The notes: generated by a model from the sequence alone, not told the origin. DNA of 64,000 nt from Macrostomum lignano (GCA_002269645.1 NIVC01001295.1:62001-126000), one strand, 5' to 3'. Shown: positions 15,201-62,377, counted from the first letter of the stretch. Numbers and translations are program-made.

Positions 15201-16347
15201 TCACAGGCTGCACACATTCCGCAGCTGGTCGAACTGGGCCGCATCGAGGTTGCCAGTCAGCAGAGCCCAGCACTGCAGCCAGCCGTCGAACGGTTGGATT
15301 GCGGCTGACATGCAGCTGCCGATCAGAAGGTTGTTGTGGACGTTGATAAAATTTCCTCCGACTACACTGGTCGATGTATCGATGGAATTTATCATGGACC
15401 CATTGTAGTAGGCGTTGAATACGAAGTCCGTGCCTCCAAAGTTGATTCCAAAGCTCATCAGCCGCTCGACTGAGTCTCCAGCACAGCCACTTGTCCAGGT
15501 CTTGCTAATGTAAGTTCCAGAAGTAAACTGGACCCTAGCTTTGATGTTGCCGCCGCTTTTTATGTACAAATTAGTCGGATTTGTTGGGTTGTTGACATCG
15601 AGAAACGAGCTGATGCACTTGTCGCTGCAACATTGTACAGGTGGTCGAAGTTTGATAAATTAAATTCTTGCTTGAACTTGAGCGCAATTATTCAGTCACA
15701 TACTCGTACATAAATACTCACACAGAGTTGCAGGAAAACTTTCCCTGAAAGAACATGCTGTACTGCTTCCCAGATGCAAAATATTTGCTGAATCCGGCAG
15801 TCGAGACTTTCACGTAGGAGCCGCTCGAGCCCTGCAGACGAACTCCGTCGACTGGACTCTGCTCGGTGACGTTCACTGGTTCCGCCTGGTAAACTGATTG
15901 GTTGACGAAGTTGTTGAAGCTCTTCTTGAAGTTGTACCACAGCACAAAATTCGAGGACAAGTTCTGGATGACCGAAGCTTCCGACAGTGAGCTCGCAGGA
16001 GTGGCAGAAGTTGGCGCGCTCGGACCTACGGTGACTTCAGAAGCCAGCAGTTTTCTCCTAGCGACCATCCGGGACCCGCAGCTCCCGGTCAATGGCGGCA
16101 TCGCAGACAGCCTGTAGCAGACGGCCCTGTCTGTCAGGTACACAGACAGGCGACACTCGCTGCTGAGAGTGCAGAGCAGCGAGCACTCGGGCTCACTTTG
16201 GGCGGCCACAGCCTCAGCACTCACAGGCTCGGTGGGACAGTCGCTGGTCAGCAACTCAAACACTGCGGAGCCGTGCTCGAGTGCCACCGACTGGTACAGC
16301 ACCAGCGAAAAAGCACAGGCTGTGAGCCAAATGACATGTGACTTCAT
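15201..16347 (-). CDS. Secreted PAN/Apple + LamG/ConA-like protein, copy 1 (349 aa); exons 16347-15722 and 15624-15201
   Basis: Hydrophobic signal peptide; PAN-like ECSLLCTLSSECRLSVY...VCYRL; S/T/P linker; LamG-like FVLWYNF...AYYNGS...LLIGS...FDGWLQCW...LDAAQFDQL. The 97-nt intron GTGAGT...ttgcAG is phase 2 and joins the two ORFs in frame (SCNS-V-DKC). Confidence 0.85.
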
Positions 16348-21597: not shown

Positions 21598-22744
21598 TCA
21601 CAGGCTGCACGCACTCCGCAGCTGGTCGAACTGGGCCGCATCGAGGTTGCCAGTCAGCAGAGCCCAGCACTGCAGCCAGCCGTCGAACGGTTGGATTGCG
21701 GCTGACATGCAGCTGCCGATCAGAAGATTGTTGTGGACGTTGATAAAATTTCCTCCGACTACACTGGTCGATGTATCGATGGAATTTATCATGGACCCAT
21801 TGTAGTAGGCGTTGAATACGAAGTCCGTGCCTCCAAAGTTGATTCCAAAGCTCATCAGCCGCTCGACTGAGTCTCTAGCACAGCCACTTGTCCAGGTCTT
21901 GCTAATGTAAGTTCCAGAAGCAAACTGGACCCTAGCCTTGATGTTGCCGTCGCTTTTTATGTACAAATTAGTCGGATTTGTTGGGTTGTTGACATCGAGA
22001 AACGAGCTGATGCACTTGTCGCTGAAACATTGTGCAGGTGGTCGAAGTTTGATAAATTAAATTCTTGCTTGGACTTGAGCGCAATTATTCAGTCACATAC
22101 TCATACATAAATACTCACACAGAGTTGCAGGAAAACTTTCCCTGAAAGAACATGCTGTACTGCTTCCCAAATGCAAAATATTTGCTGAATTCGGCAGTCG
22201 AGACTTTCACGTAGGAGCCGCTCGAGCCCTGCAGACGAACTCCGTCGACTGGACTCTGCTCGGTGACGTTCACTGGTTCCGCCTGGTAAACTGATTGGTT
22301 GACGAAGTTTTTGAAGCTCTTCTTGAAGTTGTACCACAGCACGAAATTCGAGGACAAGTTCTGGATGACCGAAGCTTCCGACAGCGAGCTCGCAGGAGTG
22401 GCAGAAGTTGGCGCGCTCGGACCTACGGTGACTTCAGAAGCCAGCAGCCTTCTCCTAGCGACCATCCGGGACCCGCAGCTCCCGGTCGATGTCGGCATCG
22501 CAGACAACCTGTAGCAGACGGCCCTGTCTGTCAGGTACACAGACAGGCGACACTCGCCGCTGAGAGTGCAGAGCAGCGAGCACTCGGGCTCACTCGGCGC
22601 GGCCACAGCCTCAGCATTCACAGGCTCCGTGGGGCAGTCGCTGGTCAGCAACTCAAACACTGCGGAGCCGTGCTCGAGTGCCACCGACTGGCACAGCACC
22701 AGCGAAAAAGCACAGGCAGTGAGCCAAATGACGGGTGAATTCAT
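21598..22744 (-). CDS. Secreted PAN/Apple + LamG-like protein, copy 2 (349 aa); exons 22744-22119 and 22021-21598
   Basis: Same architecture and phase-2, 97-nt intron as copy 1; both exons open. Confidence 0.85.
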
Positions 22745-24009: not shown

Positions 24010-24279
24010 CAGGAGCGGATTTAGGGGGGCGGGGGGGACGGCGCCCCCCCCCCAAATAGCTTGACAGAACATATTGCGCCCCCAAAAACCTGAGTTTGCG
24101 CCCCCTAAACTTGATTTTTCGCCCCCAAAAGACATTTTTTGGCGCCCCTAAGCTTGACTTTTCGCCCCATACACGCATTTTTGACGCCCCTAGCTTAAAA
24201 ATTGGCGCCTCTTATACTCGTGTTGGCGCCCCAAACTTGGACCACCCCCCCCCAAAATGAAAATCTAGATCCGCCACTG
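24010..24279. mobile_element. hAT-type GC-rich MITE with 8-bp TSD
   Basis: Imperfect TIRs CAGGAGCGGATTTAG / CTAGATCCGCCACTG; perfect TSD CGTTTACC at 24002-24009 and 24280-24287. Confidence 0.88.
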
Positions 24280-28000: not shown

Positions 28001-28829
28001 AAGGCGCCTGGGCCCGATGGCATCTACCCAGCGTTCTTGCACGAGGCGGTGAAAAACCACCGTTTCCTGGACCTGCTCTGTCGTCCCCTTCGAGCTTGTG
28101 TGGAGCTGGGCTATGTACCAGTTGCGTGGAGAGAGGCTCGGGTGGTCTTTATCCCCAAGCCTGGAAAGAGCGACTACCAATCGGTGAAGGCCTTCAGGCC
28201 TATCAGCCTCACTTCTTTCTGCCTCAAGCTCTTCGAGAGACTGGTACTTTGGCGCCTACTTTCGGTCGAGCAGAAGCGCTTCCCACTCTCGCAGAATCAG
28301 CACGCCTTCCGCGCGGGCAGGTCTACCGAGAGTGCCCTCCATGTCATCGTTGACTTCCTGGAGAGGGCCGTTCTTGGCAGCGGCTTTGCCCTCTCGCTTT
28401 TCCTGGACATTGAGGGGGCCTTCGACAACGTCATCTTCGAGGCCTTCTGCAGAGCCCTGGAATCCAGGGCCACGAACTCTCACCTTGTCCGGTGGATCAT
28501 GTTCATGATCCGGAACCGCAGTGTTGTGGCCCACCTGAACGGCAGCTCTCTTTCGGCGCCTGTCCAGAAAGGGGCCCCCAGGGCGGAGTTCTCTGGAACA
28601 TGGTCATGGATGAGTTGCTTTGCAGTGATCTCCACGACCCCATTCTCAAGGTGGGCTGTGCCGATGATGTGACCGCGATATGCGCGGGCCCCTCGGTTGA
28701 TACCATCAGAGACCTTCTGCAGGGCTTTCTGGGACGAGCGGAGCGTTGGGCAAACCAATGTGGCATTAGACTCTCAGAGTCGAAAATCACAGCGGTCATG
28801 TTTACCAACAAACTGCTCTGGACCATTAA
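25045..28829 (+). mobile_element. Non-LTR retrotransposon, R1/LOA group (ORF1 + APE endonuclease + RT), frameshifted and 3'-truncated
   Basis: APE motifs CLQINTQH...FVQEPW and SDHRFI. RT motifs FKAPGPDGI, FIPKPGK...FRPISLTS, QHAFRAGRST, FLDIEGAFDNV and CADD. Several frameshifts (ORFs 26714, 26934, 27467, 28492). Homology stops at TTAA 28826-28829. 5' end approximate. Confidence 0.85.
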
Positions 28830-31000
28830 CCTCTTCCACACTAATGCCTTAGGGTTTCACTCACGCAAGTGACGGATGGTACGCATAGCGTACCATAGAA
28901 TATTTTGTGGCCGCAAAAATTTTGGCAGCACACCCTTAAGTGCCGGCTAGGCGGGAATTTTTCGCTTTGCCTATCTTTCTTTCTTTACGAGCGGCTTATT
29001 ATTTTACGGCGTTTATAATCGTTTGATTTCGATCTTCTTTAATTCACAGCTCCACCGATTGACCGCCTGGTTTGTGTGTTTCTTTATTACGGTTAATTTT
29101 ATTTTTCCTGTGTTACTTTTTATACTATTTTGTGTTTGAACATTTTAGTACGCTTTCCATTTGTGTATATATCCTGTTTGTAAAGTTATAGGCTTTATTT
29201 TGTATCGCTGTTACATTATAAGTTATTTAAATTAGCTAGAGCTTTTTGTATCGAATATGGCCATGCAGTTTATTCGTCAAGCTCTTGTGGGTCTTCGTGG
29301 TGGGCCAGCTGAGGTCTCAAGCGATTCTGATGACAGCTCCGAGGACGAGATTTTAGAGGAGGAATCTATGGATGAAGATGTGACTGAAGAACAAGGCGAT
29401 GATGCTGAAATGCAGTGGCGAGGCGTGACTGAGGAGACGGATACACGAGAAAGCGCTGATGTGGAATTTTTCGGTGTTGAAGGCCTGAATCATGAAGTTC
29501 ACGTTCCCGCCGACGTTGAGAATGGAATCGGAAGTTTCTTTTCAATGTTCGTTACTGACGATCTATTGGAAATGTTATGCAAGTTTACCAATGCTAGGGC
29601 ATGGGCCGAGGTGCATTCATGCGAAGAAGATGGTCTTGGTCAAATGCCTGCAAGGTTGTCAGCTTGGCGCGATTGCACAATTTCCGAGATGAAAAAGATG
29701 CTAGCCATAATCATGTACATGGGTGTCGTCAAAAAGCCCGACATGCGTGCATATTGGTCCACTGATGAGTTTTACGGCAGCAGCCTGTTTCAAGGCGAGT
29801 TTTGCATCGCTCGAGAGCGCTTCCAACAAATCCTCTCCTTCTTACGCTTCTATGATTGCCAGGACAACACGAACGCTGACGATCCACTAAGAAAGGTGCG
29901 CCCATTCCTGCAATATGTTTGCCAAATTTGCAAAAGAAACTACTCACCAGGCAGGGAAGTTGCGGTCGACGAGGAGCTGGTTCTTCATAAGGGCCGGCTC
30001 ATTTTCAAGCAGTATATTCCTAAGAAGCGGGCTCGCTTTGGAATAAAAACCTACTGCCTCGTCGACGCCAAAACCGGCTATCTCTGGAATATACTCGTTC
30101 ATTCAACACCGGATGAAAATGCTCGCTTCGGAGAGGGCCTGGGCTGCGCTGAACTCAGCATAACTGAAAGAATTGTTGTTGAGCTCATGCAAGATCTTTT
30201 CGGCTTAGGCTACCAAGTATTCACTGATAGTTTTTTTCACGTCAATTCGACTTGCCAGTTTTCTTCTCGAGAAAGGCACCACAATCACCGGTTCAGTCCA
30301 GGCAAATCGAGGCATCCCAGACTCGCTTAAGACTGCTAATATTCCAGCTCCCGGCTTTCGCTTCATGCGTAAAGGTGATGTCCTGGCAATAAAGATGACC
30401 GACAAGAAGGCAAGTGGCGTTAAGACTTTGCATCTCCTCGACACTCACGGTGTTGCCGGCTCGGTCGAGCGACAGACCATCCGCCGCGGAGGGCTAGTGC
30501 AGCTGGTTAGGAAGCCTACGAGCGTTGCGAACTGCACCAAATTCATGGGAGGAGTCGATAGACTGGACTCGTGTCTCCAACCGTACCACCCTAACAGGAA
30601 GACATACCGATGGCATCAAAAGTTAGCGCTCCATCTGATGTTTCAACTGGTGCACAATTCCTGGGTTGCCTACCGAATTTCAGGTGGATCCCGGCCTTTT
30701 CTGCGATTTTTGGAAACCTGCATCACTTGGCTAATGAGGAGCAAGGGCACTGGGAAGCTGCGGTGCATGCGGACGACGCCTGCTACACACGCTGGTGACG
30801 GACACTTTCCTTCGAAGCTCCCACCTACCCAGGGAAATCCACGTCCGTCTAAGCGCTGTCGCGTCTGCTACAGAAATTGAGTATCAAAGCGCACAGTGAC
30901 CGTCTGCAAGGGTTGTGTGAATCAGCCGGGACTGTGCATTGGAGACTGTTTCGAGCAGTGGCACGTTTAAGTGCAGTCCCTGGTTCGTGTGACTTCTCAG
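28830..31000 (+). mobile_element. piggyBac element; transposase 29257-30970 with one frameshift and one nonsense codon
   Basis: DDD motifs VAVDEE, FTDSFF(TS) and MGGVDRLD. An extra T in the T7 run at ~30231-30237 splits the ORF. The C-terminal cysteine-rich domain KRCRVCYRN*VSKRTVTVCKGCVNQPGLCIGDCFEQWH is interrupted by TGA at 30878-30880. TTAA at the left junction; right TIR not identified. Confidence 0.85.
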
Positions 31001-32333
31001 CCAGCGTTTAGAGCTTACACAAGTTTGCGCAACTTATCCTGTGCAATGTACGAAACTTGAGTATGTATCGTTGTTTATTATTCTCGTTCTAATGTCAGAT
31101 GTGGATTAGATATTGCAAAAAGCTGTCATCATGATTTACGAAGCATCAACGGGCGAGCCTATTGGATTGCTGCATATTTCGCAAGGAGATGTCGTTGGTT
31201 TGTCGTCTTCTGAGATTGGCGAGCGAATCCGGCGAAGGCGACTATGCAAGGCATGCTGAACGATCTGGCTCAGTTGGATGTGAATGAAATCGAGGCGCTG
31301 TTAGCTGGTCAAGACCGGAACGAGACTTGCTCAGGGAGATGGATGTAATGCAACTCGACACTACGCCAAAGTCAGTTCTGTTGCAAGAAAAGTGGGCACT
31401 TCGTAAGTTCACATTCAACAACTGCCAATTCCACGTGCATATTTCGAACATGCCTTGATCCGGCGTACAGCTTGGACCGATTTGTGCTAAATCCGTTGAT
31501 TGTTTTGTTTATATTAGGTTTTTATAATGTTACAAACTTGTTTTTTTATATTAAGTTTTTATAATGTTACAACTGCTAAATATAGCATTAAATAGATAGC
31601 TCAGACGTTGGCTTCGGCCATAGACATTCAAAGCGTGCAACAATCTGGCTTGATTGCTATACCCCTAAAAACCCCTCCAAAATGATACAATGGCTGAAAC
31701 ACGAACTGGTGCGCGTAGCGCACGAGGGTTTTTACCATAGACGCACAAGTCAAAGTGCTTGATACCCATTCTTATTGTATTTGACCCGACATGTGTGGCT
31801 AAAGTAGAAAAGGGTGGAGCTGGGGGTGTGGGGACGAAGCCCCCACAGTTAGACCTGAACCATAGACAAAATAAGCTAAATAAAGAAACATTGCGCATTA
31901 CATTCTTGCAGGATTGCCATTCCTGCACCGAGTGCACATGTAAATTCAAGGTGCTTTTACCATAGACTTGAATAGACAGATTAAATATACAGAACTATCA
32001 ATCCCGCTTGCAGAGTCAAACCGGCACCACTCAGCTATTCTTTACTACATCGTTATAATGTATCATACCGATTAAACTTGTGATAATCACTTGCAAAAAT
32101 GTAATATCAATAGTCAATACACTTTGCATACAAACATATTGCGAAAATACTCTCATGCACTACATCTACGAGCGTATCAATTATCTACAATCTTCTGAAA
32201 TCTTGCATGCACGGATTGGTTGAAAAATAGGGAAGCAGCTCCGCTGAGTAGGGGAGCCGAGCCATCACCAAGAAAAACTTAGAGTAGGAGTTTGGGCTGT
32301 GGGGATGGAGCCCCCGCTAAGACAAACTTAAAG

Positions 32334-32689
32334 GGGGGCCGTAGCCCAGCGGTAGCGCAGCTGCTCTGGTGTGCCGCGACCCAGGCTCGATTCCAAGTGC
32401 ATCCACATTAATTTGGGGCTGAACTGGAATTTCGGCTTGGCTCGCCTGTGCAATTAACGGCCTTGAGAGCCAACCCCCCAAGGCGCAGTGAAGTGTACAT
32501 GCCTAACGATAATATAAAGTTAGGGCCGCTGTACACTCCTGTGTGAGTGTGTGCCTGCGTAACGTATCCGCGCGCTTGTATGCCTGCTCAGGGGAGTCGG
32601 GCGGAATGGGCAGTAATGCCTCTCGCCGGTTGTGTGCCTATGTCGCCTAAAGTGCGCCAGGGTGCACACAACCCCCCTGCCTCTAAAAA
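32334..32689 (+). mobile_element. tRNA-derived SINE with 15-bp TSD
   Basis: Pol III A box TAGCCCAGCGG and B box GGCTCGATTCC; short A tail; flanked by AAGACAAACTTAAAG at 32319-32333 and 32690-32704. Confidence 0.8.
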
Positions 32690-33110
32690 AAGACAAACTT
32701 AAAGTAAGAGTTTGGGGGCGTGGGGTGGGGTGGAGCCCCCGCTAAGACAAACTTAAAGTAAGAGTTTGGGGGCGTGGGTTGGGGTGGAGCCCCCGCTAAG
32801 ACAAACTTAAAGTACAATAAGAGTTTGGGGGCGTGGGGTGGAGTCCCCGCCAAGGCAAACTTAAGAGTTTGGGGGCGTGGTGGTGGAGTACCCGCCAAGG
32901 CAAACTTTAAGTAAGAGTTTGGGGGCGTGGGGGGTGGAGTACCCGCCAAGGCAAACTTTAAGTAAGAGTTTGGGGGCGTGGGGTGGAGTCCCCGCCAGGG
33001 CAAACTTTAAGTAAGAGCTTGGAGGCGTGGGGGTGGAGTACCCGCCAAGGCAAACTTTAAATAAGAGTTGCGAGGAGTGTTGGGGCGGAGCGCACCACCA
33101 AGGCTAATTA
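32690..33110. repeat. G-rich ~42-45-bp minisatellite (ggcaaactttaagtaagagtttgggggcgtggggtggagtacccgccaa)
   Basis: Tandem diverged units; duplicated at ~42865-43330. Confidence 0.85.
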
Positions 33111-33613
33111 AATTAATAGTTTTGGAGACTATATAATTCCGGTCATTACATTTGCTATTTGCTCCCACTTTAGCGGGAGCAATCTGGAATCATCTACTAC
33201 TCGTAGTTTCCAAGGAAGTGAACGGACGCACGGGGTCTTGAACTCTTGCTCTCCGTTGGATGGCTTTTAGCTGTCATTTCCCTCTACTGTCGTCTCTGTT
33301 TTTCATTGTACTTTTAAAAACAAGTTCCAAATTTTTTAAAATAAAAAAGTGAAACAATACATTAAAATGATCGTGTCTTTCTGAGCTACTTCAAGTAATG
33401 CATGCATGTTATTATTAGCTAGCTCGTATTAAAAATTGACAATTTTTTAGAACTTTTACTGACACATCCTATTGTTGCTAGTATTAGTAGTATTATCTCA
33501 GTAAAACTTTTTAGTAATACGCACGTACAGCACTAGGAAAGCAATATGGCTGCTCCTTCCGGTGTGCAACAAAGCGTGATACATTGATAAAACAGGCTAA
33601 CAGGTGCTATTCA

Positions 33614-33892
33614 CAGGGGTGTCGACATTGATTTTATGGTGGGGGACAAAGAAATAAATTTTACTTGTACATGCACATGACTGAATTCCTCTATTTACAT
33701 GATTTTGAGAATCGGTATTGTCAGCACTCATTTTAGCGTCACAATTGCTAAACTTTAGCGCTCTGAAACAAATCTATTGCTTTACTCAACGGGTAATAAG
33801 GTGGGGTGAGGGACAAAACATTATCATGTCCCCCATAGCTCATACTGGAGGGGGACATCTCCCCCCTGTCCTACCCGGTGGCGACGCCCCTG
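33614..33892. mobile_element. hAT-like MITE
   Basis: Ends CAGGGGTGTCGAC / GCGACGCCCCTG; degenerate 8-bp flanks GCTATTCA / GCTGTTCT. Duplicate at 43843-44121. Confidence 0.75.
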
Positions 33893-33954
33893 GCTGTTCT
33901 TAAACTTGCAATTCAGAAGATGCTAAATGTACGAGTACTAACTCAACAGTCCAC

Positions 33955-35967
33955 GGAAAGGCGTTTGACTCGGTGTTGAGAGCCGCTCTCCCCTTTGTCC
34001 TTCGAGCCTACCGGGTGCCCCAGCAGCTAATCGACGCTGTCATGGCGCTGTATTGCGATACTCGAGCTGCTGTGGTGACGGCGGACGGCCTGTCTGACCT
34101 GTTCGACACTTCATCAGGAGTTCTGCAGGGAGACACTTTGGCGCCGTTCCTCTTCGTGCTGCTCCTGGACTGGGTGCTTCGGACCGCACTCCCCTCGGCT
34201 AATGACGGCTTCCTGCTGCGCAGACGCATCGGTCGCCGCCACGGCGAAAAGCGCCTAAGCGTGCTTGGCTACGCCGACGACCTCGCCCTCCTGTCCTCGT
34301 CTGTTGAAGGCGCCCAGCGCCAGATCGACAGGTTGGTCGAGGTAGCATCGAGCGTCGGTCTGGTTGTCAACACGCTGAAGACCGAGGTGCTGACTGTGTA
34401 TAAGCTTCCTAGTTGGCCGCAAACTAAGAACCTTACATATGATTAATAGTAACTCAAACGAGGTAGAATATGCTTGGATGTTATTTACCGATCAACCATA
34501 TAATTATATTTACTACTACATTTTCAACGTTTGTATTAATAAGTAAATAAGCAAATAAGCGAGCTACAAGCAGGGAGAATAAGTCTGAGACACTACGGTA
34601 TAACTAAGCTACTCAAATACTCCTATTAATCTATTATATATATATATATAAATTACGCCTATCTACCTGGTCTGAGACCGATACGCTACTATTCATAAAT
34701 CTATAGTCATGGCAGTGCTCAGTCTTACCCTCCGGTCACAGGTGTCTGCAGAAGCGGTCGTCGTGATTTACAAACTATTAAGCAATCCAAAAGTTAATAC
34801 AAGGCGTGTAAAAAGAGAGTGAAAAGAGAGTGAGAAAAGGTAAAGTTTTAGACATTTAACCCCTCGCTTATTTATAGTAAATTTCCCCGATGAAGTCTCT
34901 GTGAAACTGTCTGCGTTATCATTTCCCACGTCTTCCAGCCACCGCGCAATTCCGGCCGATTCTCACGGTTCCCCTTTCTCGTGCGATTCCTGAAATGCCT
35001 CTGTTAAAAATGTAATTGAACCCCGCCCCACATAAAGCATACAACCCCTCTAAAGTGGAAGCAGACTTTTAGGGCGGCCTGCACTCGCCCTTTGCAATGC
35101 CGTCATCAAGCACTTGTGGCTTTTTGTAAGAGTGCAGCTGTCCACAACTGCTACACTCCACCACGCTCTGATAACAATGCATTTCCCTAATTTCCTAAAT
35201 CCTAAGTCCTATTCCTAATAGTTCCTACGATAGTCCCTAAATAGTCCCTAAGGCCTACATGCATATGAAATTGAATCCTTATACTGTGCCGGCCGACATC
35301 CCAGCAGACCCGACATGCCGCGGCGCAGACGGGCAGACGACCAGGCTCGCACGCTGCCAGCGGTTCACCTACCTCGGCGGTCTGGTGCCCCACGTGGAAG
35401 AAGACCTCCGGCGGCGCAGAGGACTTGCCTGGGCGGCCTTTCGTTCGATCCGAGCCGTCCTCCAGTCCGAAGCGCTGCCCGACCGCCAGAGGGCTCGGCT
35501 GTGGCAGGCGGTGGTCGAAACCGTCCTGCTCTACAACGCCGAGACGTGGACGCTGACGGCTACGCTGGAGCGGCAGCTGGACTCGGCGCACTCAGGGCTG
35601 CTCCGTGCGGCCTTTCGAGCTGACGAGAGCGTCGGGACCGAGGCCCTGTACGATCGGGCCAAGCTGCAGCGCCCGTCCACCATCCTGCTCCGACGGCGAC
35701 GCCAACTGGCGGGCCACGTGATCCGGGCCGAGGGCTACTGCCCCCAACCTGTTCAGGACGTCCTGCTGCTCACCTTGCAGGGCCCGTTCAGGCGGGGTCA
35801 GGCCCCAACCCGTCGATACGTGGACTGCCTGCTGTGCGACGCTGGGGCGCCCGACACTGCCAACGGAGCGGACTTCGTTCGCTCTCAGGCTCTGCGGCGC
35901 GCCATCTGACGCGCCCTGCTCTAACTGACTTTGCACGCGGGGCCGCGTATTTTGTTGTTGTTGTTGT
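33955..35967 (+). mobile_element. 5'-truncated RTE retrotransposon (RT C-terminal half), interrupted by an 885-bp insertion
   Basis: KAFDSV, GVLQGDTLAPFLF, LGYADDLALL, FTYLGG, LLYNAETW; (TTG)n tail. The uninterrupted twin is at ~44185-45301. Confidence 0.9.
34399..35283 (-). mobile_element. Probable solo LTR with 5-bp TSD inserted in the RTE
   Basis: Termini TATAAG...CTTATA; TSD CTGTG at 34394-34398 and 35284-35288; empty site at ~44623-44628; minus-strand TATA box CTATAAATA. Confidence 0.7.
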
Positions 35968-36480
35968 ACAGTCGGAACACGAAAGAAGCCAGACGCGAAC
36001 ACAAATATGAGAGAGCGATCAAAAATGCCCCAAAGACTTGCGACAGTTAAAACCAAGGAGTTCTATAATTAGCAATCATAGATTATTAGTTTAACGCGAA
36101 GAGTATAAAAAGCGATCGCAAACAACTAAAGGAAAAGAAAAACTTGACTAAAAGACAAGCTTGTATAAATAAGGATAAATGAGACCACAAAAGATTAAAC
36201 AAATTAAATCCAACACAGACAGACAAAGCCAACTGAATCAACGCGAAAAGGCCTTGAAATCAGATCGGGCAGATAGGCGCAAAAGGGAGGGGCACGACGG
36301 AGGGAGAGAAAGTGCACAAGGCTTGGCTTCGGAAAACAAAGCTTAGTAAAGAAATAAAAAATTTTCTAAGGTATATTTGAATGTTTAAACTCTTGCTAAA
36401 TAGTTTATCGATAAATGGTTCGTTTTCAGTAAATTAGTTGTCGATGCCATTTCTGCGCTCTTTCGTCTTCTATTTTTGCA

Positions 36481-37630
36481 TCACAGGCTGCACGCACTCC
36501 GCAGCTGGTCGAACTGGGCCGCATCGAGGTTGCCAGTCAGCAGAGCCCAGCACTGCAGCCAGCCGTCGAACGGTTGGATTGCGGCTGACATGCAGCTGCC
36601 GATCAGAAGGTTGTTGTGAATGTTGGAAAAATTGCCTCCTCCGGAAAAAACCATCGACATATGAATAGACTTCATCATGGATCCATTGTAGTAGGCGTTG
36701 GATGAGAAGGTCATACCTACGAAGTTGATTCCAAAGCTCGTCAGCCGCTCGACTGAGTCTCCAGCACAGCCACTTGCCCAGGTCATTAAGGAACTACTGA
36801 GAGTACCAGAAGCAAACTGGACCTTAGCAGTGATGTTGCCGTCGCTTTTTATGTACAAATTAGTTGGGGTTGTTGGATTGTTGACATCGAGAAACGAGCT
36901 GATGCACTTGTCGCTGAAACATTGTGCACGGGTGATCGAATGTTCATAAATAAATCCTTTTTTGATAGAAACCTAATTATTCAGTCATATACATAAATAC
37001 TCACACAGAGTTGCAGGAAAACTTTCCCTGAAAGAACATGCTGTACTGCTTCCCAAATGCAAAATATTTGCTGAATTCGGCAGTCGAGACTTTCACGTAG
37101 GAGCCGCTCGAGCCCTGCAGACGAACTCCATCGACTGGACTCTGCTCGGTGACGTTCACTGGTTCCGCCTGGTAAACTGATTGGTTGACGAAGTTTTTGA
37201 AGCTCTTCTTGAAGTTGTACCACAGCACGAAATTCGAGGACAAGTTCTGGATGACCGAAGCTTCCGACAGCGAGCTCGCAGGAGTGGCAGAAGTTGGCGC
37301 GCTCGGACCTACGGTGACTTCAGAAGCCAGCAGCCTTCTCCTAGCGACCATCCGGGACCCGCAGCTCCCGGTCGATGTCGGCATCGCAGACAACCTGTAG
37401 CAGACGGCCCTGTCTGTCAGGTACACAGACAGGCGACACTCGCCGCTGAGAGTGCAGAGCAGCGAGCACTCGGGCTCACTCGGCGCGGCCACAGCCTCAG
37501 CATTCACAGGCTCCGTGGGGCAGTCGCTGGTCAGCAACTCAAACACTGCGGAGCCGTGCTCGAGTGCCACCGACTGGTACAGCACCAGCGAAAAAGCACA
37601 GGCAGTGAGCCAAATGACGGGTGAATTCAT
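36481..37630 (-). CDS. Secreted PAN/Apple + LamG-like protein, copy 3 (352 aa, chimeric); exons 37630-37005 and 36913-36481
   Basis: 91-nt phase-2 intron. Exon 1 is almost identical to copy 2; intron and exon 2 are almost identical to copy 4. Confidence 0.85.
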
Positions 37631-37807
37631 TATTAGATCAGTTTTATAACTGCATGTGCTTGTTGAGATTCTTGGAGAGAAACGACGTGTAGGAAATAAT
37701 TCTCTTGGGAATCTGTTCAGGCTTTATCTTATTGGAAAGATACTTGCGAGGAACAAGGAAATTTCGTGTCGCATGCGATTGGAGGAAAAATTCCGGCATT
37801 ACTGCAG

Positions 37808-38143
37808 CAGGGGCGTCGCCATGGTGGGGGGACAAAGCCAAGAATTCTAGCTACATGTACGTCCATATACTCAAAATGGTTAGTCGCTGGGTATCTATCT
37901 AGGTATTTTCAGAATCGGTGTTGTCAGCTCTCTTTTTGGCGCTGCAGGCACTCATTAGCACCACAGGTACTAATTAGCGCCACAGGCACTCATTTTGGCG
38001 CCGCAGGTGCCTTGTTTTGTCGCCCTGCAGCAAAAGTTTTGATTTCCATAACGGGTCGCAAGGTGGGATGGGGGGACAAAGCATTTGCATGACACCTTCA
38101 TATCTTTTACTGGGGGACATGCCCCCCGGTGTAACGGCCCCTG
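37808..38143. mobile_element. MITE upstream of copy 3 (duplicate of 22922-23257)
   Basis: Near-identical sequence inside the segmental duplication. Confidence 0.75.
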
Positions 38144-38549
38144 AGTGGAAGGCTCTGTGGTTGCTATGCAGGAAATAAAGAAGCCATTCTGTCGCTACCA
38201 ATACTCGTCCGTTAGACCATATGTTTTTTTGCTTGAGCTGAGATGTTTTTTATCATAGAAAATGCAAAAGGATATTGAAAATGCTTTTAACATTTTCAGA
38301 TAGGCGTTAAACATTAGGAAAAGAAATTTAAGAATGGCTTGGCTTTGCAGTACCTTTTAATAGAAATACGAGTAAGTTGTTTCTAAGTTGGGTCTAAGTT
38401 TTAAAGTGACCTAATACAATCACGACTCAGATGTGGCTCAGTGGACGCTGCTAGTGGCTCTGAATCATTAATTTTTAGTTTCGACATCGTCAAGGCAAGA
38501 GCTGCTCTACAAACAACTTATATTCAATAATTCAAATGTCACGATTGCA

Positions 38550-40576
38550 TGGTCCGACCGGGCGTAGCTTGGTTGGGTGTTAAACCAGTGGGGCGTCGCT
38601 CTTGTGCGTTGGTACGGGGGGTGGTGGGCCTGGCCTTGGTCACGTGCCCGCGGCCTGGGTGGCGTTTATTTAATACGGTGCGGGCTGTCGCTGACCCGCC
38701 AAGCGCGTATTGATTTTTTTTCTCAATTTTTGCAATGGCTGACCGCGACAAACTTATGCACCTGAGCAAGGTGGCTCTGCTAGCCTTGTGTGCCAACGCT
38801 AACATAAGCAGTCGGGGCAACAAGGCCGACCTTGTCAGCGCCCTGCTCGCAGCCCCAGACCAGTCGTGGACAGATTCGCTGTTGCAGAACATGGAGCAAT
38901 CTGAGCAAGAAGCCGAAGCAGACGACAACATCAGTACGGAGGCGGCTCGGGAGTCGGCGGCGGGCCTGGACGAGGACATCGCGAAGGCGGAGAAGGAGAT
39001 CAGACTGTTGCAGCTACGCAAGGAAGCCGCTCAACTCAAGAGGGAGATCGGAGATCTGCAGCGCGAGTGTCCATCCACGCGTCCTATGAATCGCGGTGAG
39101 TGTGCCAAGCCTGCTGGCCCCAGTTACTTTCCTGATGGGTGTGATGATGCTGAATTAGACCAAGCAGATAATGGCAATGAGCTGCTTGACAGATTGTTGT
39201 CACAGAACAGGGCCAATGAACGGATGGAGTGTTCTGGTAGACGTAAGGCTCTCCTGGTTCGTGATTTCCTCGACGGCTTTGAGCAGGAAGAGGTGCTGGC
39301 TAATGGTTCTGGTGGCCGAATCACTTACAAGAGCAGAAAACCTAATCCAGATAGCATCACGGCAGCGCAGTATTTGGTAGGCAATTGCAGGCTGATGATG
39401 CAGATGATCAAGGATGGTGCCCTGGTGACTAGTAGAAATGGAACTGCCGACACGACTGATTTGATGAATTACTTACGCTACTCAATACAGATTGGCGAGC
39501 TGTTTGACGCGGGCTTCGGCCTTGCGCAGGTGAATCGTTTTGACGAGGACTACCGCACTAGGCAAGCTGAAACTGGCATGCGATGGGGCAAGGAGTCTTT
39601 CCAACTCGTTGCTAAGCACTTAATCAGAACTGGAACTCCAGCAAACCATGGAGTCAGCAAGTCATTGCCCCAGCCACGGCAGCAGCGTTTTCAAAAACCA
39701 ATAGACCCCAAGAGCCTCAGAACGCCAGACGGGGAAGAGATCTGCTTGCACTTTAATCGCCGGGGGTGCTTCCGGTCGAGCTGCAAATTCCGGCACGTAT
39801 GCCGCATCTGTTTCGAGGCCCACCCTGAGGCCAACCATTCGACAAAAAACTGAAGTCTGCGATGCTCTGTTTTAATCCTAAAATTTTGCCTAATGCTCAG
39901 CCTGCTTTAAATTTTAACAATCCTGTCGTTGGCAGTGCAGGGGGTCGCCTGCGTTTTTGTTCGTGGGATTCTGAGCTTGAGAATGACCCTGATCGGAATT
40001 TTATCCTAGACGGCATCGCAAATGGTTTTCGCATTACTGATGGCAAAGGGCTTTGTGAGACTTTTAATGCCAATTACATGTCTACTTCTGCTTTTCATCG
40101 CGCTGTTGAGCTGCAAATTAAAGAAGAGATTGAGAATGGCAGGTATTTGATTGTGCCTAAGAAGCCTACGATGGTCAGCCCTCTGGGAGCAATTCCCAAG
40201 GATAACGGGAAGGTTCGACTTATTCATGACTGCAGCACGCCTCCGGGCTACTCGGTAAATGACAACTATACGAAGAAGCTGAGCCCCAGGTTTGAGTCCG
40301 TCAAGAAGGTTGCTGCCTCTATCGGCAAGGGCTGGTTCATGGCAAAGCTTGATTTGTCGCAAGCTTACAGAAGCGTGGCGATCCATCCGGATGATTACCA
40401 GGCGACCGGCATTGGTTGGCGCTTTAAAGGCAACCGTGATCTGACATGGCTTGTCGACACCCGGCTACCCTTTGGTAGCTGCGCCTCGGTCGAGATTTTC
40501 TACCGGCTTAGTCAAGCGGTCAAGAGGATGATGGTGCGACGCGGCGTGGCCAATATTTCGGTTTACATGTTGAAAC
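38550..40576 (+). mobile_element. Truncated DIRS/Ngaro-like retroelement fragment (intact gag 38735-39853, partial RT from 39862) flanked by a 15-bp TSD
   Basis: Gag has an N-terminal SAP-like motif and a C-terminal CCCH/zinc-knuckle (ICLHFNRRGCFRSSCKFRHVCRIC...H). RT motifs SPLGAIPK, RLIHDCS.P.G.SVND, KLDLSQAYR and DTRLPFG; RT ends at ISVY before the DD. AATGTCACGATTGCA flanks both sides (38535-38549, 40577-40591); single copy at the empty site ~23649-23663. Confidence 0.8.
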
Positions 40577-40937
40577 AATGTCACGATTGCAAACTATTCA
40601 TCAATTTCCATCGGCAAACCGAAATAATGAAAATCAAACTTGAAGATTTGCTTTCGGGAAAACAATTTCTTTATTTGAACGTCTTTCTTTCTAGCACGCG
40701 CTGTCATCGCTTCGTTTTCTTCCTTTCGTTTTAGAATTAGCGCGCCCTGTGACGCTGACTTTTACCATCCTGACAGCGTATTTTGTTGTTGTTGTTGTCG
40801 TTTTAGAATGCTTATTTTGGGCAGTAGTTTGGTGGTTGTTCTTCCTCCTAAAGCAAAATATTGGCTAATTTTCAGTATATTCTTCAACCAGAAAAAGGCT
40901 GCTTCTAAAGCGTAAAAATTCGTCTGAAACGTTTACC

Positions 40938-41214
40938 CAGGAGCGGATTTAGGGGGGGCGGGGGGGACGGCCCCCCCCCCCCCCCAAAATAGCTTGACAG
41001 AACATATTGCGCCCCCCAAAAACCTGAGTTTGCGCCCCCTAAACTTGATTTTTCGCCCCCAAAAGACATTTTTTGTCGCCCCTAAGCTTGACTTTTCGCC
41101 CCATACACGCATTTTTGACGCCCCTAGCTTAAAAATTGGCGCCTCTTATACTCGTGTTGGCGCCCCAAACTTGGACCACCCCCCCCCCAAAATGAAAATC
41201 TAGATCCGCCACTG
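40938..41214. mobile_element. hAT-type GC-rich MITE (duplicate of 24010-24279)
   Basis: Same TIRs; TSD CGTTTACC at 40930-40937 and 41215-41222. Confidence 0.88.
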
Positions 41215-41393
41215 CGTTTACCCTTTGGGCTTTTATTCTAATGAAGCGATCGTTTCTATTTTCTACACCCAAGCCAGCCTCACCCAGGGCCACCTATTCC
41301 ATAGCGACGGGGCAGCAGGGAGGGCCCGGACCCCACGCCTCATCGGATGCACCACTGGGACTGACGATGTCGCTGAATAGCCTGGGATTCCAA

Positions 41394-42117
41394 TCCCAAA
41401 AAAAGGTAACACTTTGTGCGCTCACTGTGAGTGAGCAGTTAGGCCTATACCACAGTAATTTAACAGGTCCTTCCAGAGGCGAGTTATTGAGCACAGAAGT
41501 GTAGATTGGCTGGCCAATCGCTGTTAGCGGGGCCGGGGGGCTTGTCGTCGCCCGTGTTTGGGGGTGCTTGGTCCGGGGGTGGGTGCGCCGCCCCCGGGGC
41601 GGGGGTGGGTGTCTGTGGGGCCTTTTTAGCCCCGTGGGTTGTGCCTGCCTCAGGCTATCTCTCCTCGCCAGCTTGCATGCGTTTTTTTCTGCTTTTAGCC
41701 CCCTTTCTCGCAATTCCTGCAACTTCCTTTTTTCCTTTCGCTTCGTTTACCTTTTACTCTTCCAAATAGTTTTTTCGAATGCTTTCCAAATATACTCGTG
41801 TCTCGTAAATTGCCCATACAGGGCGGTAGGATGTTTTGCTCGTGCTCTCCAATCCTTGCCTTTGCTCTCTCCCTCCGGCCGTTCCGCTAAGTGTACGCTA
41901 GCTTTTCTGCCAAGCTTTGCCATACACAGCTGCCATAGACAATCTAAAAGCTAGCGTACACTTCTGTGCTCAATAACTCGCCTCTGGAGCAATTTTTCGC
42001 AACCAAATGTTTGTGGGAAAAACTTACAAATGTTTACTATGGACCTGTTAAATTACTGTGCTATATGCCTAACTGCTCACTCACAGTGAGCGCACAAAGT
42101 GTTACCTTTTTTGGGAC
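41394..42117. mobile_element. Non-autonomous DNA element with ~110-bp TIRs (TCCCAAAAAAGGTAACACTTTGTGCGCTCACTGTGAG...)
   Basis: 41394-41501 is the reverse complement of 41957-42117, the right TIR carrying a ~50-bp insertion. No transposase and no TSD. Confidence 0.8.
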
Positions 42118-42507
42118 ACCCGTTACAGAACTGTCAATCCCGCTTGCAGAGTCAAACGGGCACCACTCAGCTATTCTTTACTACATCATTATAATGTATC
42201 ATGCGGATTAAACTTGTGATAATCACTTGCAAAAATGTAATATCAATAGTCAATACACTTTGCATTGCGAAAATACTCTCATGCACTACATCTACAAGCG
42301 TATTAATTATCTACAATCTTCTGAAATCTTGCATGCACGGACTGGTTGAAAAATAGGGAAGCAGCTCCGCTGGGTAGGGGAGCCGAGCCGGCTCCAAAAA
42401 AAATTTAGAGTAGGAGTTTGGGCTGTGGGGATGGAGCCCCGCTAAGACAAACTTAAAGTAAGAGTTTGGGGTGTGGGGATGGAGCCCCCGCTAAGACAAA
42501 CTTAAAG

Positions 42508-42864
42508 GGGGGCCGTAGCCCAGCGGTAGCGCAGCTGCTCTGGTGTGCCAGCGACCCAGGCTCGATTCCAAGTGCAGCCACATTAATTTGGGGCTGAATT
42601 GGAATTTCGGCTTGGCTCGCCTGTGCAATTAACGGCCTTGAGAGCCAACCCCCCAAGGCGCAGTGAAGTGTACATGCCTAACAATTGATAAAGTTAGGGC
42701 CGCTGTACACTCCTGTGTGAGTGTGTGCCTGCGTAACGTATCCGCGCGCTTGTATGCCTGCTCAGGGGAGTCGGGCGGAATGGGCAGTAATGCCTCTCGC
42801 CGGTTGTGTGCCTATGTCGCCTAAAGTGCGCCAGGGTGCACACAACCCCCCTGCCTCTAAAAAA
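42508..42864 (+). mobile_element. tRNA-derived SINE (duplicate of 32334-32689)
   Basis: Same A and B boxes and same flanking duplication. Confidence 0.8.
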
Positions 42865-44184
42865 AAGACAAACTTAAAGTAAGAGTTTGGGGGCGTGGGG
42901 TGGGGTGGAGCCCCCGCTAAGACAAACTTAAAGTAAGAGTTTGGGGGCGTAGGTTGGGGTGGAGCCCCCTCTAAGACAAACTTAAAGTACAATAAGAGTT
43001 TGGGGGCGTGGGGTGGAGTCCCCGCCAAGGCAAACTTTAAGTAAGAGTTTGGGGGCGTGGTGGTGGAGTACCCGCCAAGGCAAACTTTAAGTAAGAGTTT
43101 GGGGGCGTTGGGGTGGAGTACCCGCCAAAGCAAACTTTAAGTAAGAGTTTGGGGGCGTGGGGGTAAAGTACCCGCCAAGGCAAACTTTAAGTAAGAGTTT
43201 GGGGGCGTGGGGTGGAGTCCCCGCCAGGGCAAACTTTAAGTAAGAGCTTGGGAGCGTGGGGGTGGAGTACCCGCCAAGGCAAACTTTAAATAAGAGTTGC
43301 GAGGAGTGTTGGGGCGGAGCGCACCACCAAGCCTAATTAAATTAATAGTTTTGGAGACTATATAATTCCGGTCATTACATTTGCTATTTGCTCCCACTTT
43401 AGCGGGAGCAATCTGGAATCATCTACTACTCGTAGTTTCCAAGGAAGTGAACGGACGCACGGGGTCTTGAACTCTTGCTCTCCGTTGGATGGCTTTTAGC
43501 TGTCATTTCCCTCTACTGTCGTCTCTGTTTTTCATTGTACTTTTAAAAACAAGTTCCAATTTTTTTAAAATAAAAAAGTGAAACAATACATTAAAATGAT
43601 CGTGTCTTTCTGAGCTACTTCAAGTAATGCATGCATGTTATTATTAGCTAGCTCGTATTAAAAATTGACAATTTTTTAGAACTTTTACTGACACATCATA
43701 TTGTTGCTAGTATTAGTAGTATTATCTCAGTAAAACTTTTTAGTAATACGCACGTACAGCACTAGGAAAGCAATATGGCTGCTCCTTCCGGTGTGCAACA
43801 AAGCGTGATACATTGATAAAACAGGCTAACAGGTGCTATTCACAGGGGTGTCGACATTGATTTTATGGTGGGGGACAAAGAAATAAATTTTACTTGTACA
43901 TGCACATGACTGAATTCCTCTATTTACATGATTTTGAGAATCGGTATTGTCAGCACTCATTTTAGCGTCACAATTGCTAAACTTTAGCGCTCTGAAACAA
44001 ATCTATTGCTTTACTCAACGGGTAATAAGGTGGGGTGAGGGACAAAACATTATCATGTCCCCCATAGCTCATACTGGAGGGGGACATCTCCCCCCTGTCC
44101 TACCCGGTGGCGACGCCCCTGGCTGTTCTTAAACTTGCAATTCAGAAGATGCTAAATGTACGAGTACTAACTCCACAGTCCACG

Positions 44185-45301
44185 GAAAGGCGCTTGACTC
44201 GGTGTTGAGAGCCGCTCTCCCCTTTGTCCTTCGAGCCTACCGGGTGCCCCAGCAGCTAATCGACGCTGTCATGGCGCTGTATTGCGATACTCGAGCTGCT
44301 GTGGTGACGGCGGACGGCCTGTCTGACCTGTTCGACACTTCATCAGGAGTTCTGCAGGGAGACACTTTGGCGCCGTTCCTCTTCGTGCTGCTCCTGGACT
44401 GGGTGCTTCGGACCGCACTCCCCTCGGCTAATGACGGCTTCCTGCTGCGCAGACGCATCGGTCGCCGCCACGGCGAAAAGCGCCTAAGCGTGCTTGGCTA
44501 CGCCGACGATCTCGCCCTACTGTCCTCGTCTGTTGAAGGCGCCCAGCGCCAGATCGACAGGTTGGTCGAGGTAGCATCGAGCGTCGGTCTGGTTGTCAAC
44601 ACGCTGAAGACCGAGGTGCTGACTGTGCCGGCCGACATCCCAGCAGACCTGACATGCCGCGGCGCAGACGGGCAGACGACCAGGCTCGCACGCTGCCAGC
44701 GGTTCACCTACCTCGGCGGTCTGGTGCTTCAAGTGGAGGAAGACCTCCGGCGGCGCAGAGGACTTGCCTGGGCGGCCTTTCGTTCGATCCGAGCCGTCCT
44801 CCAGTCTGAAGCGCTGCCCGACCGCCAGAGGGCTCGGCTGTGGCAGGCGGTGGTCGAAACAGTCCTGCTCTACAACGCCGAGACGTGGACGCTGACGGCT
44901 ACGCTGGAGCGGCAGCTGGACTCGGCGCACTCAGGGCTGCTCCGTGCGGCCTTTCGAGCTGACGAGAGCGTCGGGACCGAGGCCCTGTACGATCGGGCCA
45001 AGCTGCAGCGCCCGTCCATCATCCTGCTCCGATGGCGACTCCAACTGGCGGGCCACGTGATCCGGGCCGAGGGCTACTGCCCCCAACCTGTTCAGGACGT
45101 CCTGCTGCTCACCTTGCAGGGCCCGTTCAGGCGGGGTCAGGCCCGAACCCGTCGATACGTGGACTGCCTGCTGTGCGACGCTGGGGCGCCCGACACTGCT
45201 AACGGAGCGGACTTCGTTCGCTCCCAGGCTCTGCGGCGCGCCATCTGACGCGCCCTGCTCTAACTGACTTTGCACGCGGGGCCGCGTATTTTGTTGTTGT
45301 T
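44185..45301 (+). mobile_element. 5'-truncated RTE retrotransposon, open RT fragment 44202-45248
   Basis: 348-aa ORF with QGD, YADD and YLG motifs; (TTG)n tail. Confidence 0.9.
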
Positions 45302-45817
45302 GTACAGTCGGAACACGAAAGAAGCCAGACGCGAACACAAATATGAGAGAGCGATCAAAAATGCCCCAAAGACTTGCGACAGTTAAAACCAAGGAGTTCT
45401 ATAATTAGCAATCATAGATTATTAGTTTAACGCGAAGAGTATAAAAAGCGATCGCAAACAACTAAAGGAAAAGAAAAACTTGACTAAAAGACAAGCTTGT
45501 ATAAATAAGGATAAATGAGACCACAAAAGATTAAAAAAATTAAATCCAACACAGACAGACAAAGCCAACTGAATCAACGCGAAAAGGCCTTGAAATCAGA
45601 TCAGGCAGATAGGCGCAAAAGGGAGGGGCACGACGGAGGGAGAGAAAGTGTACAAGGCTTGGCTCCGGAAAACAAAGCTTGGTAAAGAAATTAGAAATTT
45701 TCTAAGGTATATTTGAATGTTTAAACTCTTGCTAAATAGTTTATCGATAAATGGTTCGTTTTCAGTAAATTAGTTGTCGATGCCATTTCTGCGCTCTTTC
45801 GTCTTCTAATTTTTGCA

Positions 45818-46967
45818 TCACAGGCTGCACGCACTCCGCAGCTGGTCGAACTGGGCCGCATCGAGGTTGCCAGTCAGCAGAGCCCAGCACTGCAGCCAGC
45901 CGTCGAACGGTTGGATTGCGGCTGACATGCAGCTGCCGATCAGAAGGTTGTTGTGAATGTTGGAAAAATTGCCTCCTCCGGAAAAAACCATCGACATATG
46001 AATAGACTTCATCATGGATCCATTGTAGTAGGCGTTGGATGAGAAGGTCATACCTACGAAGTTGATTCCAAAGCTCGTCAGCCGCTCGACTGAGTCTCCA
46101 GCACAGCCACTTGCCCAGGTCATTAAGGAACTACTGAGAGTACCAGAAGCAAACTGGACCTTAGCAGTGATGTTGCCGTCGCTTTTTATGTACAAATTAG
46201 TTGGGGTTGTTGGATTGTTGACATCGAGAAACGAGCTGATGCACTTGTCGCTGAAACATTGTGCACGGCTGATCGAATGTTCGTAAATAAATCCTTTTTT
46301 GATAGAAACCTAATTATTCAGTCATATACATAAATACTCACACAGAGTTGCAGGAAAACTTTCCCTGAAAGAACATGCTGTACTGCTTCCCAAATGCAAA
46401 GTATTTGCTGAATCCGGCAGTCGAGACTTTCACGTAGGAGCCGCTCGAGCCCTGCAGACGAACTCCATCGACTGGACTCTGCTCGGTGACGTTCACTGGT
46501 TCCGCCTGGTAAACTGATTGGTTGACGAAGTTTTTGAAGCTCTTCTTGAAGTTGTACCACAGCACGAAATTCGAGGACAAGTTCTGGATGACCGAAGCTT
46601 CCGACAGCGAGCTCGCAGGAGTGGCAGAAGTTGGCGCGCTCGGACCTACGGAGACTTCAGAAGCCAGCAGTTTTCTTCTAGTGACCATCCGGGACCCGCA
46701 GCTCCCGGTCGATGGCGGCATCGCAGACAACCTGTAGCAGACGGCTCTGTCTGTCAGGTACACAGACAGGCGACACTTGCTGCTGATAGTGCAGAGCAGC
46801 GAGCACTCGGGCTCACTTTGGGCGGCCACAGCCTCAGCATTCACAGGCTCGGTGGGGCAGTCGCTGGTCAGCAACTCAAACACTGCGGAGACGTGCTCGA
46901 GTGCGACCGACTGGCACAGCACCAGCGAAAAGGCACAGGCAGTGAGCCAAATGACGGATGACTTCAT
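45818..46967 (-). CDS. Secreted PAN/Apple + LamG-like protein, copy 4 (352 aa); exons 46967-46342 and 46250-45818
   Basis: 91-nt phase-2 intron GTGAGT...tttcAG; both exons open. Confidence 0.85.
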
Positions 46968-48263
46968 TTTTTGATCTGCTTTAGAATTTTAGGAATGGTG
47001 TGTAGGAAGTGACGCTCCTAGGAATTTATCCAGACTTTTATCTTATTGGAAAGATATCTTGAGGGAGACAAGGAATTTTGTGTCGCATGCGATTGGAGGA
47101 GAAGTTTCGGAATTAGTGGCAGGCTTTGTGGTTGCTATGCAGGAAATCATGAAGCCATAACTCCTGACAAACTGTTTAACAATTTCCACGAGTTAGACAA
47201 TTGCACGATTTCCACGAAGCCGAAGCGTTCGCTTCTTCTTTCTACTCCCAGCCAGTCTTACACAGGGCCACCCATTCAATGGAGACGGGGGACTGTTGCA
47301 GGGATTGACAAGCAGTTTTTCACCATCATGCAGGCTGGGCCTTAGAGCCTTTGCCTCGTATGGTGCCTGTGGTCGGTTCGGTCTCCCATTCCACAATAGA
47401 TTCACCCAGGCGTACAAGCGTTGCTCTAAGTCTGTATAGCCGCTGTTCTGACGATCCTACAAAGGAGCAAAACAAAGGCAAAACATTTGCAGAATGTACA
47501 ACAAAATAACAAGTACAGAAAGCATTACACTTTGACACCCCGCCTCACCGGATGCGCCACTAGGACTACGATGTCACTGGATAGCCTGGGATTCCAACCC
47601 CTACCCGCAATTGAGTTTGCTCAACAAAACCCGGCTCAGCGCTCTGTTTAGAGAGCAAATCAAATTCCTGCAATTTTTCGAAACTTCCGGAATCAAACGG
47701 GATGGGATTTCTGTTGATTTGGTTTCAACTCTTCCCGTTTGTGCTATGATATGGTTTCCTGCAATGTTTTGAAACCTAGTCCTTGTCAACGGAGAATAAT
47801 GCAAGCTATCCAGATAGTGAGAAATATGTTTCTTTGTTTTCTATTTCCACTATGCAGCTCCTGCATTGAGTCAACAGATGGCTGTCTGAAAGCCGAAAGC
47901 CGGTCAGAATCTGTATAGAAAGTTTTCGCAAATTTTGCAAGAAATCTCTAGCCATGGTCTATTACTATGAGTCCTGATTCAGTGGAGAATGCATTGCATA
48001 ACGCTTTTTTGCTAATAAGATTCCACTGTCAACTTTATTCAGCAAGAAGTAAAGGAAACGTATAAGCAATCGCATGTCGTACCCAGCCAGTAATCGGCAA
48101 TAACTGTAATGTATTGTATTGTACTAATTACACTTGTGACAAACGCATGCTAAAAGTATAAAATACGCATAGTTAATACACCTTCTTGCAATGTTTGGGC
48201 TGGTGTCATGAGCATCAGTTTCCGACGATCAGCTCTGGGTCCGGTTCCGGGGTGGCTTCTAAG

Positions 48264-53872
<5,609 letters not shown>

Positions 53873-62342: not shown

Positions 62343-62377
<35 letters not shown>

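Follow-up and report, generated by a model that had tools for sequence, protein, structure and literature searches.

How does a gene come to resemble one of its neighbors in its first exon and its other neighbor in the second? The question is raised by a 64-kb stretch of the genome of the flatworm Macrostomum lignano (GCA_002269645.1, NIVC01001295.1:62001-126000; referred to here as the window, with positions counted from its first letter), in which the third of four tandem gene copies had been read, from the sequence alone, as a chimera produced by unequal crossing-over between the second and the fourth. We analyzed the gene models, the parentage of the informative sites within the third copy, the DNA on both of its sides, and the family to which its protein belongs.

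Parentage of the third gene copy

Gene models, with which tblastn agrees, place four intact two-exon copies (c1 to c4) in the window, all on the minus strand and in direct orientation, with GTGAGT at the splice donors and CAG at the acceptors. Copies c1 (CDS 16347..15201) and c2 (CDS 22744..21598; exon 1 at 22744-22119 and exon 2 at 22021-21598) encode 349 aa each and have introns of 97 nt, and their proteins are identical to UniRef entries A0A1I8FWC3 (P0002) and A0A1I8G3A5 (P0007), respectively. Copies c3 (CDS 37630..36481), which is flanked by c2 and c4, and c4 (CDS 46967..45818; exon 1 at 46967-46342 and exon 2 at 46250-45818) encode 352 aa each, with introns of 91 nt. The region under study, 36481-37630, is precisely the coding sequence of c3. 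Its exon 1 (37005-37630, with the ATG at 37630) codes for a signal peptide, a PAN/Apple-like region, a linker, and the first strands of a putative jelly roll; it is followed by the intron (36914-37004), which reads GTGAGT...TTTCAG within regular GT..AG borders, and by exon 2 (36481-36913, stop codon included), which contains a variable cassette at ca. 36610-36830. As judged from these models, c3 would encode an intact, putatively secreted protein of 352 aa, with frame and splice sites untouched, and we predict that it is expressed. An origin of c3 by retroposition was rejected, since the intron is retained.

The two exons of c3 have different closest relatives. Exon 2 is identical to that of c4 (0 differences over 433 nt) and differs from that of c2 by 49 substitutions and two indels, and the intron is also of the c4 type; exon 1 differs from that of c2 at only 2 of 626 nt, and a 24-bp segment upstream of it (37654-37677) is specific to c2 and c3. 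Between the two candidate parents, c2 and c4, there are 71 substitutions, 22 of them in exon 1 and 49 in exon 2, where two indels also separate the copies. We painted a four-way alignment over 36461-37807 with the events that distinguish c2 from c4 (n = 137), which were taken as informative, and used c1, as an older paralogue, to polarize sites. Left of 36989, c3 was of the c4 type at 68 of 71 informative events and of the c2 type at 3, while from 37064 rightwards it was of the c2 type at 65 of 66 and of the c4 type at 1. The switch is strongly significant (Fisher p = 3e-34), and the maximum chi-square, 121.6, was reached in none of 10,000 permutations. At the three exceptions on the left side (36471, 36932, and 36946), c4 stands apart from c1, c2, and c3, and they are most simply read as changes in c4 that postdate the exchange. 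There is a single switch of parentage within the gene, located where the parents are highly identical; the counts on either side of the interval 36993-37333 place it in the second half of exon 1, in agreement with the earlier proposal of an unequal exchange near the 3' end of that exon.

This interval is a block of 340 bp at the 3' end of exon 1 that is 97 to 100% identical across c1 to c4. It is the only long stretch of near-identity between c2 and c4, which are 89% identical over 1.3 kb, and only four of its sites vary. From 37334 to the ATG, exon 1 of c3 is of the c2 type. At 37064 and 37315, c4 alone differs, and the sites are uninformative; at 37077, c3 shares T with c2 (C in c1 and c4), and at 37130, it shares A with c4 (G in c1 and c2). 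The sequence-only reading had described the alleles at the last two sites correctly and had attributed the patchiness to heteroduplex repair, an explanation that hangs on these two sites, of which the placement of the breakpoint decides which single one is discordant. Site 37077 belongs to the codon for Glu/Gly185, where T gives Glu185. Among public M. lignano proteins, the c4-type entries P0013 and P0001 carry Glu185, and Gly is found in P0012. Patchiness is therefore not needed, and a c4-type parent with T at 37077, together with a plain crossover between 37130 and 37334, would explain c3 fully. Heteroduplex repair at the switch zone is possible. We would place the exchange inside 36993-37333, and between 37130 and 37334 if site 37077 is polymorphic in the c4-type parent.

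Duplicated flanks and the origin of the hybrid

On both sides of c3, the DNA has a near-identical counterpart elsewhere in the window. Self-BLAST returned, in direct orientation, the matches 21578-23663 with 36461-38549 and 23649-24462 with 40577-41397, as well as 31988-33121 with 42124-43298, 32690-34398 with 42919-44627, and 35283-37807 with 44622-47122. Two units can be drawn from them. Unit 1 has a right-hand block (22119-24462) made of c2 exon 1 and its upstream spacer and a left-hand block (31988-37004) made of spacer and the 3' flank, exon 2, and intron of c3; unit 2 has a right-hand block (37005-41397) with c3 exon 1 and its upstream spacer and a left-hand block (42124-46341) with spacer and the 3' flank, exon 2, and intron of c4. 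The right-hand blocks correspond through 37005-38549 and 40577-41397, and the left-hand blocks correspond throughout once an 885-bp insertion in unit 1 is subtracted. This is the arrangement that had been read from the sequence, with everything from c3 exon 1 rightwards following c2 and its upstream region and everything from ca. 31990 to the c3 intron following the downstream region, exon 2, and intron of c4.

The flanks of c3 are collinear with their counterparts for more than 4 kb on each side and are 98.7 to 99.7% identical to them in unique DNA, a closer likeness than the averages of the BLAST matches would imply. In the right-hand blocks, 37005-38549 differs from 22119-23663 by 5 substitutions in 1,545 bp and 40577-41397 differs from 23649-24462 by 8 in 814; in the left-hand blocks, the figures are 6 in 1,277 (33122-34398 versus 43351-44627) and 22 in 1,719 (35283-37004 versus 44622-46341). 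Pooled, the spacer divergence is 0.77% (41/5,355), although it is uneven by block (0.32 to 1.28%). In the minisatellite-rich part of the left-hand blocks, it reaches 2.75%, and the copy number of a 50- to 54-bp minisatellite within the duplicated block differs between units 1 and 2. Neither the 3' part and left flank of c2 nor the 5' part and right flank of c4 has a second copy beside c3, by self-BLAST or alignment, as is predicted for a duplication bounded inside both genes.

Each unit carries insertions that are private to it. In unit 2, the right-hand block is interrupted by a retroelement fragment of 2,027 bp on the plus strand (38550-40576), in which an ORF that matches no Pfam family precedes a partial reverse transcriptase. 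A 15-bp target-site duplication, AATGTCACGATTGCA, bounds the fragment at 38535-38549 and 40577-40591, and the empty site is found in unit 1 at 23649-23663. This 2.03-kb insertion is the only one of which the sequence-only reading had spoken; the left-hand block holds another, an 885-bp element (34399-35283) private to unit 1, with short inverted ends (TATAAG.../...CTTATA), a CTGTG target-site duplication, and an empty site in unit 2 at ca. 44622-44627. A MITE-like element of 723 bp with 77-bp terminal inverted repeats (41394-42116) is private to unit 2. Private insertions with target-site duplications therefore identify the spacers as two separately evolving copies of DNA rather than one sequence written twice.

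Unlike the collinear blocks on both sides, the centers of the two spacers are not common to the two units (7.5 kb at 24463-31987 versus 0.7 kb at 41398-42123). The center found only in unit 1 starts with ca. 370 bp of ancestral spacer and continues with a frame-broken LINE at 26934-28872 (Exo_endo_phos_2 and RVT_1, that is, endonuclease and reverse transcriptase), which adjoins a piggyBac-type transposase at 29257-30880 (DDE_Tnp_1_7) split over two ORFs. A paralogy of ca. 80% between 24308-24828, upstream of c2, and 47222-47965, upstream of c4, is a trace of an older tandem unit ancestral to c1, c2, and c4. Given that unit 1 continues this older paralogy, unbroken, past 24462, it is therefore ancestral there, and unit 2 has lost sequence at the MITE. 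The unequal centers also led us to consider that the spacer had not been duplicated as one piece; this was rejected, since sequence has been lost from unit 2 at the MITE.

The window as a whole (G+C content of 48%, rising to 66% at the right end, 62001-64000) is rich in transposon remnants and in mini- and microsatellites. A dispersed repeat of ca. 210 bp with 79% identity lies upstream of c2 (23020-23229) and of c3 (37906-38115) and also at 57500-57714. An inverted repeat pair of ca. 950 bp (2-944 and 7173-8111; 85% identity) and an 85% match between 3471-3838 and 13607-13978 are probably transposon copies. Long minisatellite arrays occur at 1809-2697 (21 bp), 9227-9772 (45 bp), 18250-18709 (31 bp), 53479-53731 (33 bp), 56288-56734 (31 bp), and 59204-60751 (22/34 bp), a richness that fits the 15% simple and tandem repeat content reported for the M. 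lignano genome. A (TAAC)n microsatellite 1.7 kb long (48827-50522; 424 units, 97% match) shows strong local GC skew and AT skew.

We consider it quite probable that c4 and c2 underwent a single unequal homologous exchange, which very recently duplicated the DNA between them in tandem and left c3 as the gene at the junction. One such exchange accounts for the hybrid gene, the sharp switch, the c4-type left flank, the c2-type right flank, and the direct collinear order. The mechanism (unequal crossing-over by nonallelic homologous recombination [NAHR]), its direction, and its recency are what we infer from these patterns. The starting state would have been an older c1-c2-c4 array whose copies were homologous only over the genes themselves and ca. 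100 to 200 bp around them. Misaligned chromatids or homologues would have paired c4 with c2, and a homologous exchange within the near-identical block of exon 1 would have given, in this order, c2, a spacer, a gene composed of the 3' flank, exon 2, and intron of c4 joined to the rest of exon 1 and the promoter region of c2, another spacer, and c4. Later, the spacers would have diverged by ca. 0.8% through substitutions, each gaining its own transposon insertions and unit 2 undergoing one deletion. The exchange would be very recent, as its 0.77% spacer divergence lies below the 1.39 to 1.58% found between the M. lignano subgenomes (PMC10733133).

The main rival is that the same arrangement was made by the assembly rather than by the genome. 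The true locus would then be c1-c2-spacer-c4, and two haplovariants, one broken off within the left part of its c4 and the other beginning within the right part of its c2, would have been joined through the 340-bp block, with a false tandem copy and a false chimera as the result. M. lignano DV1, a neopolyploid, has three subgenomes 1.4 to 1.6% apart, and in its assemblies some haplovariants have been expanded or collapsed in error (PMC10733133); a spacer difference of 0.3 to 1.3%, with presence or absence of transposons, is of the order of haplovariant differences. The true partners that such an error predicts are at hand in P0011, a c2-type protein with the exact c3 exon 1 protein, and in P0013, which has the exact c3 C-terminal part with Glu185. 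Along similar lines, the public M. lignano proteins include exact c1 and c2 but neither an exact c4 nor any protein of the c3 type (c2-type exon 1 with c4-type exon 2), and the exact c3 and c4 proteins were absent from a collection of 15 billion proteins. However, the published assemblies were made from long reads, with Canu at an errorRate of 0.04, and the window contains no Ns or gaps. Over 1.3 kb the parents are 89% identical, and no more than 340 bp of this come close to identity, which gives an assembler little ground for a false overlap; falsely duplicated haplotypes, moreover, tend to meet at arbitrary positions, whereas the join in c3 is exactly homologous and in frame. In addition, the divergence of the spacers is roughly half the genome-wide figure for the subgenomes, with 41 differences observed against ca. 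75 to 85 expected in 5,355 bp. We regard an assembly artifact as unlikely; even so, a tandem copy of ca. 1% divergence in M. lignano assemblies needs a read check before it is counted as a gene.

A replication-based template switch, either by break-induced replication or by fork stalling and repriming on the paralogue, would give a product identical to that of crossing-over and inseparable from it by sequence alone, and it could account for the discordance at one or two sites of the switch zone. Nevertheless, homologous exchange would be expected to produce just what is seen, one clean switch within 340 bp of homology, and the alignment revealed neither microhomology-type scars nor inserted bases at the junction, so that a template switch appears very improbable.

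Gene conversion does operate in this family. Copy c1 (15096-16536) is a mosaic in which the 3' flank, the 5' part of exon 1, and the upstream region are c4-like (83 to 91%), and exon 2 and the intron are c2-like (96 to 100%), the c2-like tract extending into part of exon 1 and switching in the same 340-bp conserved block (c1 ca. 15847-16051). The flanks of c1 are unduplicated; its mosaic therefore looks like gene conversion, with a tract of ca. 0.8 kb. For c3, conversion without crossing-over, by which one half of an older copy at this position would have been overwritten by c2 or c4, can be given hardly any credence, since near-identity runs more than 4 kb past the gene on both sides, through spacer in which the flanks of c2 and c4 share no homology able to sustain conversion, and one would have to suppose two independent multikilobase conversions with a common end point. 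The feature expected of a conversion product, a mosaic tract without flank duplication, is not found in c3, both of whose flanks are duplicated.

The protein and its family

The hybrid had also been described as a new domain combination, a description that goes too far. The proteins of c1 to c4 share one architecture, with a signal-peptide-like start, a cysteine-rich PAN/Apple-like region, and a predicted C-terminal lectin-like jelly roll, and the exon boundary (residue 209/210) falls inside the jelly roll. The novelty of c3 would lie in the pairing of a c2-type N-terminal variant with a c4-type variable C-terminal cassette. The N-terminal variants of the c2 type and of c4 differ by 11 aa in residues 1 to 120, and the c4-type exon 2 cassette has about 33 differences from that of c2 and 3 extra residues; residues ca. 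109 to 209 are nearly invariant across the whole family. The DNA upstream of c3 comes from c2 and its 3' untranslated region from c4.

The tentative PAN/Apple-like assignment comes from Pfam PAN_1 (PF00024), with scores of 16.3 bits for c3, 16.6 for c2, and 21.3 for the relative P0005 (all below the curated cutoff of 21.4), and from six cysteines in residues 37 to 90; UniRef names relatives "Apple domain-containing protein." In the AlphaFold model, which had an alignment depth of only 8 sequences, residues ca. 122 to 352 form an all-beta sandwich (block pLDDT of 46 to 82, mostly 65 to 82; whole-protein mean of 54). Foldseek matched it, with a probability of 1.0, a TM of ca. 0.4, and an identity of 11 to 16%, to jelly-roll subdomains of bacterial receptor-binding modules and CBM40, and we would take the likeness of the modeled C-terminal domain to lectin-like jelly rolls as generic fold resemblance only. 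For this domain, no Pfam family was found at an E value of ≤1, and a family profile gave no PDB sequence match. An exhaustive HMMER search gave three weak hits and no significant relatives outside Macrostomum. The automatic names "GON domain," "Hyphal_reg_CWP," and "Phage tail protein" on some family entries fit the sequences poorly.

The variable cassette of exon 2 is ca. 220 bp long and exists as a c1/c2 type and a c3/c4 type that are 20 to 25% divergent and differ by two in-frame indels, and it is flanked by blocks that are identical in all copies. Nei-Gojobori dN/dS ratios for exon 2 were 0.58 to 0.69, elevated yet not above 1, and positive selection on the cassette is not claimed. The dS value rose from 0.037 for the conserved block of exon 1 to 0.09 for the N-terminal part and 0.19 for exon 2; the low value in the conserved block fits homogenization by conversion. 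In the public M. lignano set (UniRef, P0001 to P0013), the family has at least ten distinct members; P0003, P0009, P0013, and P0004 look like mismodeled genes with internal deletions. The protein encoded by c3 exon 1 is identical to the exon 1 part of P0010 and P0011. An exon 1 with a 6-aa insert is paired with both types of exon 2 (P0008 and P0012, from independent annotation); exchange between gene halves has therefore happened repeatedly.

On a tentative view, to which we give a low probability, the hybrid may be one step of recurrent cassette shuffling in a Macrostomum-restricted family of secreted PAN and lectin-like proteins. The near-identical blocks of low dS could act as recombination anchors between the variable N terminus and the cassette, and exchange and conversion among tandem or homeologous copies would keep making new pairings of the two. 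Cassette shuffling of this kind can be likened to the recognition families of immunity or reproduction. A literature search found nothing specific on this family or on tandem duplication or conversion in Macrostomum.

Comparison with known systems

If real, c3 would be a very young gene made by unequal crossing-over (<1% divergence), with both parents, both spacers, and the breakpoint block preserved, and a useful worked example. It bears on the diversification of lineage-specific secreted families in a neopolyploid flatworm, where three subgenomes provide extra exchange partners.

The nearest parallel is found in the anti-Lepore hemoglobin alleles, which are duplications left by unequal crossing-over of the delta-globin gene with the beta-globin gene. 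There, as here, diverged tandem paralogues in direct orientation exchanged within the genes at homologous positions, the resulting order is parent 1, hybrid, parent 2 with the intergenic DNA doubled, and the hybrid is in frame, with the promoter of one parent and the 3' part of the other. Unlike the anti-Lepore alleles, c3 is a lineage-specific secreted lectin-like gene of a flatworm, known from a reference assembly rather than as a clinical variant; its spacers have since gained transposons, and the reciprocal (Lepore-type) deletion allele was not seen.

Hybrid genes formed by NAHR are also familiar from other tandem families, such as the red/green opsins, CYP11B1/CYP11B2, GYPA/GYPB, and CYP2D6/2D7, and chimeric tandem duplicates have reportedly been found in Drosophila populations. 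With all of these, c3 shares recurrent exchange in high-identity blocks between neighboring paralogues, newly paired N- and C-terminal variants, and a regulatory swap, whereas its family differs from them in having a short hypervariable cassette between invariant blocks and c3 itself in being known only as sequence. Interlocus gene conversion likewise produces mosaic genes that switch in conserved blocks, and both the c1 mosaic and the homogenized state of the 340-bp block are probably due to it; conversion alone, however, does not duplicate flanking DNA, and c3 has both flanks duplicated. The third copy opens no long-standing question. It represents a well-known way of making a new gene, in a lineage-restricted family, and is of an ordinary kind rather than new biology.
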